Assembly: GCA_023515725.1 (NCBI GenBank)
Contig: JALDTO010000162.1
Coordinates: 162,476 to 226,475 of the forward strand
Source of the DNA: Amoeboaphelidium protococcarum X5
Taxonomy: Eukaryota; Fungi; Aphelidiomycota
Direction of reading: 5' to 3'
Length of the DNA stretch: 64,000 nt
Of the stretch, positions 3,788 through 48,406 are shown piece after piece (position 1 is the first letter of the stretch; every line of letters starts with the position of its first letter). A model generated the notes under the pieces. The model was given only the letters and a program-made list of their open reading frames with translations. It was not told the DNA's origin and searched no databases. Both the position numbers and the translations under genes were made by a program.

Positions 3788-3859
3788 TGCCCAGTCCCAG
3801 AATCGAACTGAGATTTCTTCGGCCACAACGAAGTGTACTAACCGTTATACTAACTGGGC
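3788..3859 (-). tRNA. tRNA-His (anticodon GTG), intronless, G-1 not encoded
   Basis: Reverse complement GCCCAGT TA GTATAACGGTTAGTAC A CTTCG TTGTGGC CGAAG AAAT CTCAG TTCGATT CTGGG ACTGGGC A folds as a cloverleaf. A T5 Pol III terminator lies just downstream. Confidence 0.95.
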
Positions 3860-4092: not shown

Positions 4093-6008
4093 TCAACGAA
4101 TAACGCGTTGACGCTTGGCATGGCGAAGGCCCAATGTCTTTGCAACGTCCTTACTCAAATTAGAGCAAACGTCCTGAATATACTCGGCACTGCATGACTT
4201 CTACAATTTAATGACGGCCATCTGTGTAGCCTCTTCGTAATCCTCAGCAAATTTTCAATAACATTAGCAGTTCTCTATGCAGAATCTGCATCAGTACGCT
4301 CGGCATAACGTTCCAGCAAGTCCAGCATAATCAAACAAGCCTCATCACTCTCATCATATTGGCGAACCAGCTAAGCACAAAACTCACTGGCAAGAATGCA
4401 ATCAGAGTACTTGAAAATGTCTTTAGAACTCTCAACAAAATCGACAAACATGTCGCAACTGCAAGCTTCGCTTAGGATTGAATGTAGAGTTTTATGCAAA
4501 TTTGACGAGCAATGATCTTCTTCTTCATCACTGGCGGAATCATGTAGTTTAGAATACTTTGCCAAAGCCAACTTGACAAGCTCCAAATTCTTTCCACTGA
4601 GAACATTTTTAAATAATGCCCACACACTTCTAAACAGATTATCCTTCGGTTCAGCAAAAGTTAAACAAGTATACTCAAATAAGCCGGTTACATCCAGCAA
4701 TGCACTTTGTATGTCCTTGAAATATTAAGGATTAAAAGCAACAATTGGTCTAAAATTGGTATAAGAGTTGCGTGTATCATCTAGTACTTAACGAGGCAAC
4801 TTCATGGCAAGAGCCACAGTCAGCAATTCTGCCTACTTCAGTTCTCCTTTGTTCACCTTATCTGCAATTAACTTTACGTACCAGTTGTCACATTAATACA
4901 AGTCAAATTAGCGATAATATCGAGCACTGAATACCTAAACTAACTCAATTAAAGCAAATACAGTACTTAAAGACGTGACCGCGATATCCTATGGGAGAAT
5001 TAGAGACAACTGGTACTGATACTTCAACAGCACCTCCCCACAACCAATATTAACCGCGTACTTCTTACTTTCAGCCTAGATGTCTTCAAAAGTATTATCT
5101 GACAAGTTGACAGATTACTACTATTCACATTTAGATAACATCTTCTGAAAAAACTCTTTCAACAAAACAAGCATATCCAACTAGGTGTGCAATTGTTCCC
5201 GCTTTAAGATACAAAGACACGCGCTAAGTACACGATAAGTAGGTTCCTCTTCCAAAAAGTAATGCATCACATCCTTCTCAATGTCAGTACAGAAAGGATC
5301 CGGCAGCATCTTCAAGAAATAGCTCAGAAAATTGAATGGCAGTACTTTCTCCTAAATGCTGTTAAAATTATAATTAGACAAAAGTTCCATTAAACAACGC
5401 AGACCATATTTCTTCAGTGCATCATGAGCATATCCATACTATAGCACTTTGATCTTTGGGTTGCAGCAATCACGATCGCTCAAGTACGTCTATAACAACA
5501 CGGTGGCAAAGTCCTTAGATGGGGCGCTAAGAAACTCCGTGTTAGGCAGGTACGGCGCGCTCCACTAGTAATACTTCCTAGCTCACTACCACAAACTCCC
5601 CCGATAATTATCTGGATCTATTTCGCCATATCCAGCTTGATACTCTATATCAAAATAGCCCAACAATTCTCTGCGCCATACTTGATTCAGCATTCCCGGG
5701 TCATTGTCAACGCGGACGAGGCCTTTCAGATAGCGTCTCAGAGTCTGGTTCTTCAGAATAGACTTGTGCAGGAAGTACTGGACAGCTTCCACTGTATTCA
5801 GCTACAGATAATTGTGCTCTCTGATACGGAATGCTGTCAATACAGGACCATAATACGCGTGATAGGCATCCTTGACAACGCGTTCCTGATCGAGCAACAC
5901 GCCCTGGACGCGTTAGCTTGTCAGCGACAGCTCCAACAGGTCCACTGGTCTCAAGTACTGGCCCAGCGATGATTTCGGTACAGCATTTAATAAGTGTGTG
6001 ATATTCAT
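4093..6008 (-). pseudogene. F-box-like protein (~640 aa) with an in-frame TGA and a probable late frameshift
   Basis: Starts MNITHLLNAVPKSSLGQYLRPVDLLELSLTSQR (F-box-like). In-frame TGA at 5583-5585, then the frame stays open for ~470 codons. Near 4249 a T-run shift restores ENFAEDYEEA...AKRQRVIR* (stop 4093-4095); the unshifted frame stops at 4155. Confidence 0.55.
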
Positions 6009-18974: not shown

Positions 18975-21425
18975 TCATTTCTATTCAACTTTATCCAAGA
19001 TACTCTTTAGTATTCCCGCAACTGCCTTTCCATACTTGATCAGAACGGTAATTTCTTTCTCAAGGTTGGCCAAATCATCGCCACTATCACTGTCTGTACC
19101 TTCTGTGATTCTATAATTATAGTTGGGCAATAGCCAGGTCACCAAATTTTAGTAATTTTTAACAATATGATTTAGCCTCTTTGCATTGGCAACCATCTCA
19201 TCTTGGCTCTTTCGAAATGTCAGCTCCAAAATCTCTCTGCGCATTATTTATAACGCCATAACAGTATTCTTATTATGGCTCAATACGTAGCCAGACGCGG
19301 TTGTGCGCTGATTTAAAATCTTGCGCTATATTTCCTCAGCATCTTTGAACTTTTGGGCAAGCGCGCGTTTTATACTTGCTGCTCTTGAAGGCAATTGAGC
19401 ATTCAATGACTTCAATTGTTGAATCTTCTCTTCATTTAATTCCACCATCTTTGTGCAAATATCTAACGTGCGAATCGATAAGAGCAACTAATTCTCTAGT
19501 TCATACAGCTTTTGAGATAGTTGCGATTCTGCACTAATAAATTCTGCCGACCTTTACGTACGGTAAAGATGAGTCGACAGACGCAGGATTTCACTCAGAT
19601 CAAAATCCTTGAACTGTAGCTCTGACTTCTTGACAATTTTCGCAACTTCATTCATTTTCAACATGAGCACATCCATCTGACGGATGTCCTTTTTTTACTA
19701 GTCATCGGCTTCCTAAGTTGCTTTGTCACTGCTAACAATCTAACTTTTTTTCAAGCTAGTAGGCTAAGATTCAACAACAACAGGCTTCTTCTTACCCTTC
19801 TTACCCTTTTTAAACTAGTTCTTTCCGGTGGTCTATTACGCAGTAAGCTTAGCTTCATCTGTGACCGCACTAAAAGGCTCAGGTGCATCAATAGCTGACT
19901 ATAGTTCAACCAACTACGCGTCTGCTAAATCATCCTTTTCATCTATATCTTCATCGACAGGATCCGAGTCCATTAAAATATCAAATTGATTGGTGACTTC
20001 AATCGGCTTTTTTGATGCCAAAGAATGAATTGGTTATGGAGGAGATTTAAAGTGATTGCCATGCTCAACGCTAAAGTGCATATCATCCGGCAGCTCATCA
20101 TCCACGATTTATTCTTCTTACTCTTCTTCAATTGCGTCCAATTGATTACTCTGAATATGTTCCTGAGACTCACGTATAGATTAACCATTCTACAAAGATG
20201 GCGTCACATATTCTACCTCCGCATCCAACTCATTACTTTGAAGATATTCCGCGCTATCGATAGATTATTATTATTAGTTTTCCAAGAATGAAGGCCTATC
20301 TTCCACCTCTGCATCAAGAAAATCACTAGGAGAATATTGCGTAGGCTATATTGACTACTACTATTAATATTCCAATTGCAACGCGCCTTGGTACGGTGAT
20401 ATCTGCTCCAGAGCATCGTCCACTTCTTACAAGACAGTCTTGACCGCATCCGACTGCTTCTTGACAAGTGCAATGTTCGCCTAACTAGCTTGGCCCTTCT
20501 CTAGATGAGAACGAGGTATGATTTTCGACTTGAGTTCCACCAGCTATTCAGCATAACTACTTAGAGTATCACCACCAGAAGGCAAAGAAACATCGAAATT
20601 CAAGTTGCTATAATCCTTAATCTTCTTCAAAATATCCTCCATTTAATTGAGAATGCACATATTATACTCGCTCATAAATAATGTCTAGCTAGCATATATT
20701 GATAGATACGTGTCCTCTTCCAAAATGAACGAAGACACTACAGTCTCATAAAACTACTTTAAAGAGTTGAGTTGCGCCTCAGTCGAGATATCTTTGCTGT
20801 CCATTAGAGCAACGCTGTTCTCAATAGCGCGTATAATTTAGAGCATTGTAGCCAGCGCCTATTCTAAATATTCAAAGTTGGGTGCTCTTCTGAGACCCTC
20901 ATCAATCACAGCGTTATACTCAGGAAATACGTCAGTGCAAACATCTTTCAGCAACGAGGGAAACACAGATCTAATATCGTCCCAAGTTATATTATCCAAC
21001 AATTCAGCTATAGCTACCAACACATGAAACTAATGATCGATTGCACGCGATAAATCTAGATTAGATAGTGACCATTCAGTAACGTCGACAGGCCTCAAAC
21101 GCGACTTTACCTCATCCAACTTATCAGACAGACCTTCACGAATTTTCTGATTCATTACAGCTCTCTCCATTAGATCAAAGTGCTAAAGATAATCCAAATA
21201 ATTATCGCGATTGATCAAGTCTATCTGCACCGGGGCCACATTACTATGATGAGGTGCTTTGTGAAACTATTCAATAGCATTATTATGCGGAGGGCTTCCG
21301 ACACCAAGATCCGAGGCCCCAATCACCTGTGCACCATAAGAATTAGATGATCGCTATTAAACTGGTCCAGCGCGTACCACTACGATAAGCAGAAGCATAG
21401 CCAAGAGACTTTTCGTCATATTCAT
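18975..21425 (-). CDS. Secreted helical protein, family member A, 816 aa
   Basis: Signal peptide MNMTKSLLAMLLLIVVVRA|GPV, N-terminal helical domain, acidic ~30-aa repeats, Lys-rich patch and C-terminal helical domain (QDEMVANAKRL). Paralogous to the next gene. Confidence 0.8.
20657..21113. repeat. 457-bp near-identical block, copy 1 (copy 2 at 23643-24099)
   Basis: Direct comparison by eye shows only ~3 substitutions; flanking DNA is strongly diverged. Confidence 0.92.
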
Positions 21426-21900
21426 GATAGTCGAATTAGCAATCTTAGTATAGTGCTTGGAAAGAGTGCAGGTGGGGGTACAGATCAACGAAAAATGATC
21501 AAAATTTTTATCGAGATTTTAAGGAGATTTAGCGCGTGATAAAGACTATAATTGATATCTCTCTGTAGCCTGGTGGCATTTAATCAAAACACATCACAAA
21601 GTGTGATGCATTGCCAGAAAGCGATAAAATGAGAACTGGTTACACCAAATTTCAACTCTACCAATATATTCGAACCTACTTTATCATTTAAAAGTAGTCG
21701 CAAGTGTAGAACATTACTCGCTGAGTAAATACTCATACATCACACATTGTGATGGATTTAATAGTCTTGAATCTGTCTAATTTAGAGTACTTACAAAGAG
21801 TACTATTTCGTATTAAGCTACTAAGTAACAGTTAATTTCAGATTTTTTAAGAATTCAACTTTAAAAGTGTCAATAATAAATTTTAGTCTATCTAGAATTT

Positions 21901-24396
21901 TCATTTCTCCCTCAACCCCTACATCAGAGTACTAAAAACACCCTATACAGTCTCGCCATATTTGGTCAATTCCTTGATGTCCTTCTCAAGAGTTTCCAAA
22001 TAAGCACCATGCTAGCTCTTCTTACTTTCTGATAGACTATAATTGTAATCTGGCAATAACCAGGTCACATAAGTTTGATATCTTTAAATCAGAGAATTTA
22101 AAGTTTCGGCATTGGCAGCTAGTTCTTCTTGACTCCTCTTTGACATTAGCTTCTTAATATCATCACGCAGAAACTTTAAGGCGATAAGCACAAACGCATT
22201 GTGGTCAAATACAACATCTGACGCGGTGGCATACTGATTTCGAATCTTACCGGAGACGACACTGGCAGCTTGAATCATTTTGTTAAGAGAACGTTAAGTG
22301 GTGAACACACTAGTGGATAACTGAGCATTCTTCAAATTTTACTTCAGGATTTAGTCCTCGACAGATGCCACAATCTTCATGCCAGAACTGTGAGCATAAG
22401 TAATAAATTTCAGCTCGTGTACTAGGTTGAATAGCTTTTAAGACAGCAGCCATTGAACATCCTTAAACTCTGAGGTCTTTTGTTTTCGATAAAGAAGAGT
22501 CTGCAGATTCTAAATATCACGCCAATCAATACTATTCAAATTGTGTTCTCCTTTCTACACCATTGATGCCACTTCCTCAATCTGTGACATGAGCCCCTTC
22601 ACCTGTTCGGCTTCTCTCAATTTTGAACTAACGATTTCATCAACAGATTTTTCAGTTGTCCGTCTTTGACTTTCCTTCTAGCTGTTGAGCTATGGATTAA
22701 CAGCCGCCTTCTTTTTACCCTTCTTTTTCTTCTTGGGCTACTTCTTACCACTGGTAGATTATGCATCAGACTCTGGAATATCTGTAATCTCGCCAGGAGG
22801 CTCCAATAAGTCACTAGATGGCGATTCTTCAGTAAATTCAACGTTTGTAAAGCCTTCAGTTTCGACAGGATCAGAGTCCACGAGAGTATCAAACCTATTA
22901 GCGACTTGAATTGGCTCCTCTGGTGTCATTGAGAGCGGTGGAAAGGTTGGAGACTCAGCATGAATAAAATCGTTAGCATTGACGTAGAAATCATCCTGCA
23001 AATCAAGATTCGCAACCTCTTCATCCACCTGCTCTATCTCTGCATCGTAAGCATGACTTTGAGGGTACTCTATATCCTCAGTGGACAATTGTTATTAACT
23101 TTGCAAAGATGAGGCCCTCTGTGAAATCTAATCGTCCAAATCATCACTTGTACGATAATCTGAATTTTCAACGGACGACAATTAATCTTGCAGAGGTGAA
23201 GCCATCTATTCTGCTTCTTCATCAAAAGCATCACTCTGAGTATGCCCAATATCCTCTGAGAGCAATTACTACTAGTTTTACAAAGGCGGCGCCATCTGTT
23301 CCTTCTCCGCATTTAAAGAATCACTATGAAAATATGCTGTAGGCTCAATGGACAATAGCAATCGCGACGCGTCTTGCTGCGGCTATATCTGCTCCATAAC
23401 ATCGTCCACCTCTTATAAGACATTCTTCACAGCATCAAACTGCTTTCTAACGAGCAAAATGTTGCTCTGGCTTGCTTGACCCTTTTCTAATTGCGAGCGA
23501 GGTAGTAATTTAGACTTGAGTTTCACCAGTTGCTCAGCATAGCTCGTCAGAGCATCACCATCAGACGGAGCAGGAATATCAAAATTCAATTTACCATAGT
23601 CCTCAATTTTCTCCAAAACATCTTCAATTTAGCCAACAATATACATATTATACTCGCCCATAAATAATGTCTAGCTAGCATATATTGATAGATACGTGTC
23701 CTCTTCCAATATGAACGAAGACACTACAGTCTCATAAAACTACTTTAAAGAGTCGAGTTGCGCCTCAGTCGAGATATCTTTGCTGTCCATTAGAGCAACG
23801 CTGTTCTCAATAGCGCGTATAATTTAGAGCATTGTAGCCAGCGCCTATTCTAAATATTCAAAGTTGGGTGCTCTTCTGAGACCCTCATCAATCACAGCGT
23901 TATACTCAGGAAATACGTCAGTGCAAACATCTTTCAGCAACGAGGGAAACACAGATCTAATATCGTCCCAAGTTATATTATCCAACAATTCAGCTATAGC
24001 TACCAACACATGAAACTAATGATCGATTGCACGCGATAAATCTAGATTAGATAGTGACCATTCAGTAACGTCGACAGGCCTCAAACGCGACTTTACCTCC
24101 GCCAGCTTTTGAGAAAGATCTTCACGGATTTACTAATTCATGGCGGCTCTCTCCTCTAAACTAAACTACTTATTGTATTCTATAAGACTAGCACGGCCTG
24201 TCTAGTCCATCTGCAATGAGGACACCTCAGCGTCACCAAGATAGACATCAGGCTAAGCAATCGCTGTGGATGCACGGCTTTCCATATCAAGCTGCGGAGA
24301 ACCAGTCCCGCTATCAGCATGAGATAAAGTCTACAAGACTGGTACAGCGCGTATTGCTACGGTATAAAAAAACAAAGCCAGAAGAATTTTCATCAT
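21901..24396 (-). CDS. Secreted helical protein, family member B, 831 aa
   Basis: Signal peptide MMKILLALFFYTVAIRA|VPV. Colinear with member A (EDVLEKIEDYGKLNFD vs EDILKKIKDYSNLNFD; QEELAANAETL). Confidence 0.8.
23643..24099. repeat. 457-bp near-identical block, copy 2 (copy 1 at 20657-21113)
   Basis: Same length and orientation as copy 1, inside the paralogous CDS. Confidence 0.92.
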
Positions 24397-24585
24397 TATT
24401 ATTACTACTTGAATTCAGCAATCAATTACGCAAGCTATGAAGCAGTGCTGAGTACAAAGAGGAAGTAAAGATCTGCTAAAAATGATCAAAATTTATCTCA
24501 ATTAAGGGGATACAGATCAAGATAGGGGCAACAAATTTGGCCTAAAGTGTTTAAAAATATTTTTTTAAAAAAATCTATATTTTAT

Positions 24586-25734
24586 TCATGAACTTTCAAT
24601 TTGTTATAGCTTTTCAGCTAAATCTACCACCAACTGATTCGCAACGACGATGCTTTCAACCACAGCCGTAGCCTTCTTTACCAAATCCTCGGGCAATGAG
24701 ACGTGATAAGTGTCTCGATAAACTTGCTGCGACCTTAAATATAATAAATCGTCCAGCATAGGCTTGATCGCATCCGCATTGGCCAACAACTCTTCATCCG
24801 GTCTCCATTCGCGCCTATCTTGGTCATGTATGTAAAGCTCCAGCTCTTTAAATATCTCCTGCATCTTCATGGAAATCGCGGCATTGTGTTTCATCACGAT
24901 AAGTGTCTCCTCAGCATAGTAGTCAAAGGCTTTCTTTCTGGCGCGCTCCAAGGAATTGTCCAGCTTTCTGGCAAGCTGTTTTACAACTGCCTTGAGTTTA
25001 AGCAGCTTCTATTACTACGGCTTAGTGTAATCATGAAATTTTGCGCTCAAAACTTCCTGTACAGGGCCTTGGAGATAACGCGCCATTTTACTCATATCAG
25101 GATAAACACCTTTGGCCATATTGCCCAGTTGGGAACAAGCCTCGGGGAAGCCGTCAGTTTTGCTTGCTTCTTTAAGAAATTTCTCCACTCTATTGAGGTG
25201 ATCCCAGTCAATTTAACTCATTTCCTAGATCATACTCTTTATGGTGTCCTGCAGTTCATCCATCTTTAAAAGCTCATTATTAAATTTAACTTGCAACTCT
25301 TCCACTCGGTCCCTTTCGATTATTAATTGCTCCTCCGAGGGCAAGATGCTATCAAGATCTTCAGTCTGTTACTAACGAGCTCTATTATTTCTTAATGATT
25401 TCTTGGATTTTTTACTCTTCGATTACTTATGCGACTATGCAGATGTCAAAGACGCGTCTATGTCTCCAGATTTTCTTCCATTTCTAACAGATAACGCACG
25501 AAATTCTTCTTAATCCAGTGTATCACGTACAAGGATGTCGTTTCCATTGAGTGTTACACTGTCTAGCCTGTCTGTAATCTCATTTTCCACGTAAGGAGAT
25601 ATCGGACGCGTCACATCAATCTCAGAGGACAATCTTCCAACTTAGACTGCTTCAACGTCGGAATTCTACCTTCCATTAAAGGTTGGAATACAATTAACTG
25701 ATATTACAAAAATTAGAATAAAAAGCAGCTGCAT
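24586..25734 (-). CDS. Secreted helical protein, divergent short family member C, 382 aa
   Basis: Signal peptide MQLLFILIFVISVNC|IP. C-terminal DEELLANADAIKPML aligns with the E.L.ANA motif of A and B; the N-terminal domain is missing. Confidence 0.7.
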
Positions 25735-26367
25735 ACTTCAATTCAATTGACTTCTAATGAAGATGTATTTTTATCATGCAGTGAATGAATGAAAAACGTA
25801 TAAAGTCCCCTAAAACTTCAAAGCATACTGTCAGGGGGGATCTGATTAAATTGCTTAATTCTAGTTTGGACTATAAATCAAAACATATAGTTCGAAACAT
25901 ATAGTTCGCCATGATAGAGATGACTAAACTGTTCTGAATACAGCCTTGATAAAAGTTGGAAACTAATCTGGTTGGACCTTTGAATCGTGTTAAATGTTAG
26001 CATCTACTGTACTTACAGATGTGAGATGTCTGTGAAACTTTTTCGGTTAAAACTAAATGGTTGAGGTCGAGTCGCATTGAAACTCATGAATTATACTTTA
26101 AAAATTGGTAACGAATATCTCTAATAAGTTAGATAGGGATTGGTTGGTCTCAGGTGGCGATGTTGTGCAAGATTGTGTCTACGCTGATTGGTCATCATCA
26201 TATCGCTGTGAAACAATTGGCTTGGCTGTTAGATCAATCTGTGATGCTGTTAGTATCATTACTCTTAATTTCGCTTCTATTTTTCGATTAAAATATTTAC
26301 TGTACATCAATACTCTGTATATATTAAACGTGAGAATACAACTTGTGATATTAAAATCGTATACAAT

Positions 26368-33348: not shown

Positions 33349-34582
33349 TCACTTCAGTCTCCCTGAGCGCTCTTCCTGATCTGCAACATCGCTGGGCATT
33401 AACCGCGCTGGCTCGAAACCGCATGGAGACTCGGGATCAGCAAGCAATGCATTAGGAATTGTATCATTCTTACCACCAATAGACGTGTATCTACAAATTA
33501 ATATAAAACGTAAATAGTCTTATAATAAAACAATACATTACCCTCTGTCATATAGGTTGCAGTATGGAACGTTGAGCACGTCAATAAATTGCCAAATCTC
33601 AGTAAAAGACCAGTCCAAGATCGGATTAACGCGCATCACCAGTGGCCATCCATTATTAGAGTCGGTCGGACTGAATGCCTATAGATGCTCTACAATTATA
33701 ATGCAACTATGGCGTAAACTGATCTATAACAAAGATACTTACAACAGTGAGGATCAGTGCGTCGGGTGCCCATAAAGATGGCTCTTGATGAAGGTGATGA
33801 ACTTTGGCAATATTCACTCCATTATTATAAGAACGCCTGCAGCCCACTTTTGATCGACCCGTCATATTCAAATAGACGAAGTCCATAGCTACATTTAAGA
33901 AACAATTAGATAATAAAACTTGAATACAATGATATAAAACCAAAATTCGTATAGATTATTCTTACCTAAGTGATGCTTAGTGGACAAATTTCTCAATTTC
34001 TTCGAATGGATATTGAGATCGGATATAGAGAGCATTGATTACACCAGGTCCATAATACGGCTCACGACATTCAATTGGTGTCGCATTCTCAACATTGGTA
34101 AAATGAATGGCGCAACCTATTTAAAGCAATCGCAGAAGAACTGTACAGTCTTTACCACCATTATAACTTATAGATAGATTATCAAAACCGTATTATCGGA
34201 AAGCGTCCGCGATAACAGACAGCGAGTGCTCTACTTTACGTCGAAGTATAGGATCGAGTCTATGGGAAATAGCATCATTCTACTGCGCCAGCCACTTCTC
34301 TCTTGCCTTTCTATTATGAATAAGATCATTCCTCTCATCATGCCTCAACTTAACCAGGTGTTCCATATTTAAAGATGAATCGGATATTACGTGATTTATC
34401 AAATCATTGTACATAATCGTTGCAGTTCCACTCAGATCATGACCGATAACGATCGTTGTTGGTCCATCATCAGAATCTTATTCCAATCGATAATAACCAT
34501 TGAGTTGAGCACACATATCCTCGATCTTTGACTTTAAAGACGCGTCAAGCTCTAAATCCACAAGTAATCTATATTCGGACAT
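33349..34582 (-). CDS. FAD1: FAD synthase (PAPS-reductase family), 350 aa; introns 33889-33965, 33690-33742, 33491-33541
   Basis: [52 protein letters not shown]. Three GT..TGTAG introns restore a 351-codon frame. Confidence 0.92.
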
Positions 34583-34969
34583 CGCTGTAATGTGGGATAT
34601 TCCGCGTTTGGATTAGAATTTTAAAGTTGAAAGTAAGTAGTGCCCAAGCTTCGACAATGCACTTTTAACACCTGGTAATAGAGCAATTTGTTGCTCAAAT
34701 GCAAAAACGGCAACCTTGCTATGGAAGAAAGTTCGATGGATTAGAGAAGGTCAAAATCGCACTGCAAAGAGGAGAATGCACTGTGCTGTTATGTATCCCA
34801 GCATAACCTGCTTTTCATCTTTTGTCTAACGCGTTCGTAACAACATTCATGGACCGCTTGCGTACTATAGAGTCAAAATCACATCAATTCTAAATTCATT
34901 TTATTCATCAAACATCATTCAAAATATATATTCTTCATCTTCTTCAATTCATCAATACTTTCAACAACT

Positions 34970-36097
34970 TCATTCATTGGGAGGCCAATTCACAAACTAG
35001 CAAAGACGTTTGAGGATAGAACACAGATTTGAAGTTCCCAACGATCCGGTGCACAAGTTGTCAACACATTGACACAGTTTTTACTCAAGCGATTTCTCAG
35101 TATTGATTGGCTGAGGTGATGGCGCATTTACAGAAGCTTCCGAGTTGGCTTGATTTTGCTGTAGAGGGGCAACTGCTGGAGGTGGAGATGGATTAGGAGG
35201 AGTAGGTGCAACAAGATTGTGAGGATGATTGTGGCCTTCGTGTCCAGGTGGAACCGCTTGAGAAGGCGGTGGCGATGGAGCTGCGCTGTTATTGTTGCTT
35301 GATGCAGCAGCAGGAGGAGGTGTAGAAGGAGTCACTGAATTGTCAACTTCAACTTAAGATGGTCCTAGCAGAGCTCGTGGATCCTATGCGTCACTACCAT
35401 TGGACGCGACGACATTTAAGCCACCACTACCAACTTGGACTTCAAAGCAGTCAATGTACTGCTGGGCATCATTGAGTGTCCAGGCGAACATGCAAGATCT
35501 TATTTCACCTTGCTACCATGTGGATGGGACCTGGACTTGGCCCGTACATTTAGCCCAACTCACATCAGAGCCATTGCAATTATCGTAAGGTGTGGTGGCA
35601 ATCAGCTCCATACCGCCAGTCGCGTTGTTGGACGCGCCAGAAGTTGTTGTAGCTGCGGATGAAGTGAGAGATTCATCACCAGGAGTGCCAGAGAAGATGG
35701 CCTATTCATCAACTTTACTACCGGCAGATGAAGCATCAGTAGAGCAATAGATCCACACATCAGAATGCTTTTGTTGCAAATGGCCGCGCGGAGGCCACTG
35801 AACCACAACCGTAGATCCTGGCATCCACTTGGCCATGGGATATTTGGTAGTGTACATTTACCCAGAATCGGCTGGCGCGGTGGGACAGCGAATTGCTCCA
35901 GCGGCCACGATAAAGTTTCTATCCTTGGACTCATCACTACCTTCATATCCTTGCTTATAATAAGAGTAATAGCGCGGATAGCCAGCACATTGACCAGGAC
36001 CTTTGACATCAGTACACTCCAAGTGAGAGTGGCCTGAAACAAAGTTCAAGAGTGGGATAACAACTGTAGAGACACGTAGAATTTTAGTCATGGGCAT
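34970..36097 (-). CDS. Secreted His-brace copper protein, LPMO-like, with Pro/Ser linker and Cys-rich tail, 375 aa
   Basis: Signal peptide MPMTKILRVSTVVIPLLNFVSG followed directly by His1 (HSHLECTD). Also CAGYPR, YPMAKWMPG, VQWPPRGH (second His) and FAWTLNDAQQYIDCFEV (Q-x-Y-x-x-C). Confidence 0.75.
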
Positions 36098-36371
36098 TCT
36101 CACTATGAATATTTTTGATAAGACCAGATTATAATAATGAAGAGAAAGAAAGAAGTATTAGATGTCCTGATGGTTGTGATATCAGATCAGATGGAAGTTC
36201 GATTTTCTGATTGCTTGATATTCTCTTGATTCAAAGCAGCCGATTTACATTGGACGAATTCATCATAAGAAATTGAATTGGCAAACTCTGAACAACACGC
36301 AAAAAACGTAATTTTATTCAAGTGTTATAGCAATATGGTGCGAAAGACTATATAATCTTATAGTAGAAAGT

Positions 36372-47434: not shown

Positions 47435-48406
47435 TCATGACTGGCACTGAGAATACAGGACAGCGTCAACAGTTGCCAGATTGCTAAAGAGACGCTTCAT
47501 AATGGAAACATAAGAGTATAGGATCACCGATGCCTGCTGAGATACATCGAAAGTGGAAGATGATTGGGCCTTAAGAATGCATCTAAAATAATGTTTCTTG
47601 GCACTTTAATGCCCGCAAGACAATCCCAAAGCACTACAAAAAGGGACGCCAATAGAGAGTAGAACAATGTTCATCAAAATGCGACTCAAACGCCCATTGC
47701 CATAAACGAATGGATGAATAGACACAAATTTGAACGAGAACTCGGCAGCCAAATGAAGACCACGAAGCCAATTATCATCATCATCATCATCAATTTCCAA
47801 GCTCTTAAGATTCAACTTGGCCAATTTCTGACCAACCTCCGCCATTAAATTAATCATAGACTGCGGCACTAAATCTGGTGCAATAAACTGATGAGTATCA
47901 GCACAAACATTAACATTTCTGTACTTACCAGGTTCAGATATCAAACCATTCATCAATATGCGGTGGGCATTTTCGATCAATTTCTCATCCAACAGGCACC
48001 GTTTCACAATGAAGCGATCGTAAAGAAAGAGAAACGCGTCAACGTGCTGAGTAACTTCAACTCTACGTCTTTATTCCGCGTCCCTTTAGATTGATGAAGC
48101 TTGAATGTCTGCACGTATTAAACAACTGTCATCAGAAGTCCGATGTGATGGCAGAGTCTCGAGATGATGAGACACTAGAGAACGAGTTTCTTCAAATGCA
48201 AGTCCAGCCTTTTCTATATAATTGGAAAAGTACTCGGAAAAATTTAAGATTCAATAAAAATTAAGATTATACTTCAGCTGCAGCAATTTAGTTTGGCTTA
48301 TCAGCAGTTATCTATATCATCTTTTAATACGTCTTTTGTAGTCAGAAACTATTTCACTCAACGCTCCCTCCGTTCCCCACACCAGGGCTGTGAGTAAATG
48401 AGACAT
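47435..48406 (-). pseudogene. Fic/Doc-domain gene, disrupted
   Basis: FSNYIEKAGL, EVTQHVDAF, AHRILM...PGKYR, HPFVYGNGRLSR (acidic motif residue replaced by Tyr). In-frame TGAs at 48317-48319 and 48251-48253. Confidence 0.75.

Follow-up and report, generated by a model that had tools for sequence, protein, structure and literature searches.

Introduction

The lytic polysaccharide monooxygenases (LPMOs) of families AA10, AA15, AA11, AA13 and AA9 are secreted proteins that share one fold, a histidine at the first position of the mature chain, a second histidine and a last strand with the motif Q/E-x-Y/F. Q-x-Y with an axial tyrosine is the pattern of the cellulose family AA9, and the chitin-active AA11 enzymes carry E-x-Y. 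An LPMO-like fold with an N-terminal histidine is also seen in the X325/Bim1, AA16, AA14 and Egh16-like proteins, and His-brace proteins of this fold without polysaccharide activity exist (X325, some AA16). Candidate LPMOs have been screened for by a histidine after the signal peptide, a second histidine and an N/Q/E-x-F/Y motif (PMC5320794). A putative, uncharacterised group named 'LPMO16' (A. niger An07g08250), present in fungi, oomycetes and some animals, has very low similarity to the AA families (PMC5320794, PMC6950343). Disordered C-terminal regions are known from CoAA9A, a Cys-linked dimeric LPMO that acts on cellulose and assists the penetration of plants (PMC10990093), and from PcoAA14A, whose His-rich tail binds copper (bioRxiv 10.1101/2025.11.04.686606).

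Aphelids, parasites of algae and close relatives of the fungi, must cross the walls of algae; how they do so is stated to be unresolved, enzymatic entry being proposed and unproven, and their cysts contain chitin (PMC6299283). Amoeboaphelidium protococcarum infects cultivated microalgae (PMC8657485) and has undergone a genome-wide duplication (PMC10608142). We analysed a stretch of 64,000 nucleotides from its genome (strain X5, contig JALDTO010000162.1), called the window below. A preliminary description of the window, made from the letters alone, had pointed to a gene for a secreted LPMO-like protein of no family that could be placed, and had proposed that the protein might breach the host wall or remodel the cyst wall.

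Results and Discussion

The LPMO-like gene lies at 34970..36097 on the minus strand of the window and reads through in genetic code 6 as a single exon of 375 amino acids followed by TGA. Its 375-codon frame (36097 -> 34970) contains seven in-frame TAA or TAG codons, which could mark it as an artefact or as a non-functional pseudogene broken by stops. However, TAA and TAG also occur within all long ORFs of the window. At glutamine positions 100, 238 and 316, moreover, CAG and TAG or CAA and TAA interchange between the copies of the gene, which directly supports code 6, with TAA and TAG encoding glutamine in this gene. A public NCBI protein (P0019) is identical to the code 6 translation. The preliminary description had correctly anticipated both this code and the fragmentation of the gene by standard-code calling; a 79-aa piece of it exists as P0020.

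Searching with the first of the stop-free pieces, we recovered a full-length second copy (P0001) of 372 aa on contig C142 (L002), the core of which differs from the window copy at three residues only. The 90% cluster of P0001 comprises KAI3639029.1, KAI3653895.1 and KAI3653097.1, all named 'hypothetical protein' of A. protococcarum, together with P0019, and it bears out the aphelid origin on which the preliminary description had made its reading depend. A profile search of the A. protococcarum genome returned these two copies only, which fits one ancestral gene with one copy per subgenome in a duplicated genome. The gene is also intact on an environmental contig (L012), with 88% DNA identity over 2.7 kb.

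Three public sequencing runs behave as RNA, since they pass over the introns of the gene next door and leave intergenic DNA without coverage. Each run contains contigs without a joint over the LPMO-like gene, the longest measuring 1026 nt at ~93% identity; one spans 34925-35947 and another spans 36000-36200. Read for the presence of transcript, the contigs therefore indicate that the gene is transcribed and intronless in a related strain. The three runs are possibly the series of Graesiella infections (PMC8657485).

Comparison of the window copy with the two other copies gave pN/pS values of 0.05-0.06 for the core, corresponding to strong purifying selection, 0.06-0.12 for the terminal module and 0.34-0.40 for the linker; over all comparisons between copies the linker gives 0.26-0.40, and the copies also differ there by indels. 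No sign of positive selection was seen in these comparisons. The codon swaps, the intact copy in a wild population, transcription and purifying selection refute the pseudogene or artefact reading, to which we assign a negligible probability. The gene is real, well conserved and previously unannotated, and its protein is not obviously part of the dbCAN list of CAZymes published for A. protococcarum.

The protein begins with a predicted signal peptide (aa 1-22, 36032..36097; this and the following features are on the minus strand) that contains a hydrophobic core, with valine at -3 and glycine at -1 before His23. The cleavage site was called by the (-3,-1) rule and by conservation: a histidine directly follows the hydrophobic leader in all 15 family members with an N-terminus, and small residues at -3 and -1 directly precede it in 14 of them. 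Cleavage is predicted to occur before His23 (36029..36031), which would become His1 of the mature protein and of the predicted brace and is found in all members with an N-terminus. His25 (36023..36025), or mature His3, is nearly invariant, with alanine in its place in the divergent relative P0031. The presumed second brace histidine, His106 (35780..35782), is part of WPPRGH in the loop after model strand 74-79, and P[PA]RGH with this histidine is found in 17 of 17 aligned rows. In the last strand, Gln212-x-Tyr214 (35456..35464) would provide a second-sphere glutamine and an axial tyrosine. The tyrosine and the sequence Tyr-x-Asp-Cys are present in every one of the 17 rows and the glutamine two positions before the tyrosine in 15; P0031 has T-x-Y in place of Q-x-Y.

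Eight cysteines fall within aa 28-217 and are kept in all complete members except P0031. A tyrosine-rich stretch at aa 40-51 (35945..35980) lies in the loop/helix insert after the first strands and is a candidate substrate-facing patch; alignment A1 shows no variation at its Arg42 and Tyr44. The main elements of the preliminary description thus hold for this part of the protein: secretion with a 22-aa signal peptide exposing His23, the second histidine in VQWPPRGH at 35780-35782, the eight-Cys domain, and the last-strand Q-x-Y-x-x-C, present as Gln212-x-Tyr214-x-x-Cys217. All three features used in the LPMO screen (PMC5320794) are found in the window protein. A limited search of the A. protococcarum genome found no other candidate with a complete set of His1, His2 and Q-x-Tyr.

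AlphaFold2 predicts the mature core (aa 23-224, 35426..36031) as a beta-sandwich containing the eight conserved cysteines, with pLDDT 80.9 and pTM 0.82. We searched 48,161 PDB representatives with this model. The top 20 matches are all LPMO-family proteins (Z 8.3-10.8) and the first unrelated fold follows at Z 7.0, in agreement with the immunoglobulin-like sandwich of LPMO type that had been expected. The Z scores of the core are 10.8 for AA10, 10.3 for AA15, 10.0 for AA11, 9.8 for AA13 and 9.3 for AA9; across all comparisons with these five families they range from 9.3 to 11.4 and are about equal, so that no family stands out. AA17 and AA18 are absent among the structural match rows. Residue 1 of the model aligns with His1, the first residue of solved LPMO chains, from which the core differs by an rmsd of 3-4 A at 8-21% identity. 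The loop that follows a core strand contains His106, and Tyr214 stands where the last strand begins; LPMOs keep their second histidine and axial aromatic residue at these places. In the predicted structure, the core has the LPMO fold with the residues of the His-brace motif.

The same fold would also suit a copper protein with a His brace but no cutting activity on polysaccharides, either an H2O2-producing oxidase, as are some AA16 proteins, or a copper scavenger of the X325/Bim1 kind, with a His cluster in the tail as a further copper site. X325 and some AA16 proteins provide precedents and the conserved extra His25 could crowd the site, but X325 (Z 8.3), AA14 (7.8) and AA16 (7.3) score below the active families AA10, AA15, AA11, AA13 and AA9, and the protein retains Q-x-Y in full. 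The His-rich tail of PcoAA14A, which binds copper (bioRxiv 10.1101/2025.11.04.686606), offers a parallel for the His cluster, and the family is without an assayed member in the literature searched; on the other side, the window protein does not end in a GPI-like hydrophobic stretch, and a separate His1 family, unrelated to it by profile, occurs in the genome. The absence of a Pfam match, the polar C-terminus and the lower Z place the protein outside X325/Bim1, and unlike the Egh16-like proteins, in which aspartate replaces the second histidine, it keeps this histidine. We regard a copper protein without cutting activity as possible, if on the unlikely side.

None of the available Pfam models of AA families recognises the protein. 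Like its relatives, it scores 11-14 bits against AA9 (PF03443), far under the cut-off of 27.8, and when the stop-free pieces were searched against Pfam the one result was a faint AA9 match (E=0.063), from the Gln212-x-Tyr214 strand. Neither the window protein (at E 10) nor its relatives (at E 1) matched LPMO_10 (PF03067; AA10/AA15), and no model of AA11, AA13, AA14, AA16, AA17 or AA18 matched in the Pfam search of the window protein. A sequence-profile search of the PDB at E 10 found no LPMO. The sole match of that search, ribosomal S12 (E 0.015), was rejected as chance, as were the DUF3304 and NCBIfam matches; an ESM Atlas query with a 57-aa stop-free piece was uninformative.

We also compared the protein with DUF7492 (PF24320), an uncharacterised family that is mostly ascomycete in Atlas clusters. 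The window protein scores 13.1 bits (E=0.054) against a cut-off of 27 bits. Among the 14 family members scanned, 11 match DUF7492 at E<0.01, and the orthologue-level relatives P0008 (34.6 bits) and P0010 (27.2 bits) pass the cut-off. Since the window protein is below the cut-off and these relatives are above it, we treat it as a relative of DUF7492 and do not file it as a member. The matches run from His1 to the second histidine, near model position 101-102. By structure, the ESM Atlas aligns DUF7492 with TM 0.69 over 177 residues, with the same fold and His register. The first ranks of the Atlas by both features (0.91 and 0.90) and structure (TM 0.71 and 0.67) are two unnamed Mucoromycota LPMO-like clusters of 63 members each, which have automatic names only and no Pfam family; AA10 follows at TM 0.58. 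The window protein differs from DUF7492 in its start, H-S-H, and in its pattern of eight cysteines, and a profile search even at E 10 found no DUF7492 protein, too few words being shared.

The window protein thus branches distantly from a family that is catalogued already, though uncharacterised. While the absence of a match to characterised CAZy AA families was borne out by the available Pfam models, the statement that no family could be placed was not, because the protein is related to DUF7492 and has structural kin among LPMO-like proteins of Mucoromycota. The fold and motif, the failure of the AA models and the DUF7492 matches make it an LPMO by anatomy that lies, by the tests run, outside the characterised AA families. 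Compared by description only, the 'LPMO16' group of Voshol et al. may be the same wider group as the DUF7492 kin. The freely accessible literature, which we searched, yielded no paper that deals with DUF7492 or with LPMOs of this type in aphelids.

The core is followed by a low-complexity Pro/Ser/Ala/Asn linker (35090..35425) with 22% proline, which is probably disordered judging from its composition. The linker contains the GHEGHNHPH of the preliminary description at aa 285-293 (35219..35245), a cluster of four histidines that may form an extra copper site. Four tail histidines are present in all four A. protococcarum proteins and are unaligned in other relatives. At the C-terminus, the cysteine pattern marks a helical hairpin (34994..35089) with Cys 342, 349, 359 and 366 and an unmatched Cys344; the model of this part consists of two helices (pLDDT 80.7). 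The 5-Cys terminal module described earlier indeed has five cysteines in aa 342-366, but only four of them belong to the conserved module. The hairpin pattern is found in six lineages, that of the window and five others, twice in two of them, and is absent from the rest. A fold search with the hairpin gave no informative match (best Z 4.3), and the tail contains no CBM1, other Pfam module or recognised carbohydrate-binding module. What had been proposed as a novel binding module is an optional helical hairpin.

The number of tail cysteines is odd in 9 of the 17 rows; three of these are relatives whose tail ends in a basic patch and one cysteine. In its low complexity, its histidines and its unpaired cysteine the tail is like the disordered C-terminal regions of CoAA9A and PcoAA14A. 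This is a likeness of composition, and tail dimerisation and copper binding are suggested by analogy only. On this analogy, a role of the tail in dimerisation or anchoring is as plausible as one in carbohydrate binding.

Further relatives were found in 18 metagenomic clusters, some of them fragments. Thirteen relatives, those whose core is nearly complete, share 40-59% identity with the window core, and the positions of His23, His106 and Tyr214 are kept wherever they are covered. A tree of 17 cores resolves only the A. protococcarum clade. The contigs of relatives that we read consist of compact eukaryotic DNA that uses the standard code. On two of them we found the conserved downstream neighbour of the window gene, a PAPS-reductase-family (FAD synthetase-like) gene with three introns (33349..34582, minus strand) that serves as a synteny marker; the best matches of the copy on contig L005 lie exactly beside the two A. 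protococcarum LPMO-like genes. One contig carries a ciliary C2 gene. An ACC marker scores 734 bits against the A. protococcarum genome, 712 against the best fungus and 686 against the best mammal, a weak positive, and an eIF2-gamma marker gives a tie (677 vs 672). The hosts of these relatives are probably aphelids or close kin; in view of the two markers we rate their aphelid identity as only likely. Pattern scans of bacterial and archaeal genomes, viral contigs and JGI metagenomes were blank and tblastn of plasmids found no relative; these searches are insensitive, and the scans also missed known JGI members.

The divergent P0031 consists of the core only, is 40% identical and lies at 3079-3684 of contig L013 (Logan SRR17187268), two genes from a chitin synthase. 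L013 is gene-dense; its divergent chitin synthase is 22-30% identical to A. protococcarum's own, and it also carries a ResIII/DEAD helicase and an S1/P1 nuclease. The contig looks like a large DNA virus or a viral insert, although viral scans were blank. On L005, a tyrosinase, also a copper enzyme, lies at 4816-5823, ~4 kb upstream of the relative P0011, probably by chance.

We propose that the protein would be secreted and act as an LPMO with a single copper, one of a subfamily that is related to DUF7492 and uncharacterised. Removal of the signal peptide would free His23, whose amine and ring would bind one copper together with His106; Tyr214 would be the axial ligand and Gln212 would position H2O2 or O2. 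Once the enzyme is reduced, H2O2- or O2-driven oxidation of a glycosidic carbon would break the chain of an insoluble polysaccharide of a wall. Copper binding, brace geometry, catalysis and substrate are all predicted properties. We consider cleavage of some polysaccharide fairly probable and put it no higher because inactive His-brace proteins of the LPMO fold exist (X325, some AA16).

The likeliest target would be the parasite's own chitin wall, of the cyst, germ tube or resting spore, which the enzyme may loosen jointly with GH18 chitinases. This reading, which we hold tentatively and at somewhat less than an even chance, is supported by the presence of only two copies in a duplicated genome, purifying selection and the conserved downstream neighbour. 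The nearest structural clusters are in Mucoromycota and Ascomycota, fungi with chitin walls, the divergent member is located near a chitin synthase, and chitin is present in aphelid cysts (PMC6299283). The A. protococcarum genome has 12 GH18 and 13 chitin-synthase matches and no match to AA9 or LPMO_10, this absence being a weak negative; the searches of this genome with PF03443 and PF24320 were run without a positive control and prove nothing. Against an action on the own wall, LPMOs active on chitin and those active on cellulose score within 1 Z unit of each other, Q-x-Y is AA9-like and the adjacency to chitin synthase comes from one contig of uncertain nature.

Alternatively, the same copper enzyme could be aimed at the cellulose or hemicellulose of the host alga's wall, at the tip of the penetration tube. 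The need of aphelids to cross this wall and the proposal of enzymatic entry (PMC6299283) speak for such a role, and the best single PDB match is the cellulose-active ScLPMO10C (Z 10.8-11.4), but its lead over chitin-active LPMOs is within noise. The AA9-like Q-x-Y motif with the tyrosine-rich patch and the disordered tail, whose spare cysteine recalls CoAA9A (PMC10990093), point in the same direction, whereas the tail is without CBM1 or another Pfam module, there is neither family expansion nor positive selection, and the nearest kin are in fungi that apparently do not bore into algae. With one gene per subgenome, no recognised CBM and no positive selection, the host-wall-breaching enzyme of the preliminary description is unsupported, and we find this target unlikely. 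Its other option, remodelling of the cyst wall, is one towards which copy number, selection and relatives lean slightly, and remodelling of the own chitin is the slightly likelier substrate reading of the two, although the arguments for either substrate are weak.

Activity on any polysaccharide, if true, would give the DUF7492-related group its first function and could found a new AA family, and knowledge of the substrate would separate remodelling of the own wall from host entry. The window gene is single and small and can be expressed and assayed. Should the enzyme attack the host wall oxidatively, which we think improbable, this would provide a concrete mechanism for aphelid host entry and would date oxidative attack of this kind on walls to before the aphelid-fungal split.

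The separate His1 family mentioned above, secreted and of 311 aa, is encoded at L032:1345-2280 and L033:1342-2277 (genome contigs C286 and C264); it has a weak Egh16-like match and a Cys-rich second domain. A published list (PMC8657485, Table S3) contains 14 'AA15' transcripts for A. protococcarum, some fused to GH18, and these encode mostly long unbroken domains. None of the eight readable A. protococcarum GH18 loci (within L014-L025) has an N-terminal His domain and PF03067 has no match in the genome; the 'AA15' transcripts may derive from the host or a contaminant.

In the FAD synthetase-like gene, short introns at ~33491-33541, 33690-33744 and 33891-33969 are spliced in RNA, and the protein has an extra N-terminal domain. 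Elsewhere in the window, three tandem secreted helical proteins (18978-25737, minus strand) are encoded by ORFs of 872, 837 and 383 aa; a near-identical block is common to the first two. The minus strand also carries a Fic/DOC domain gene (PF02661, E=1.3e-11) at 47438-48250 and a tRNA-His(GTG) at 3788-3859.
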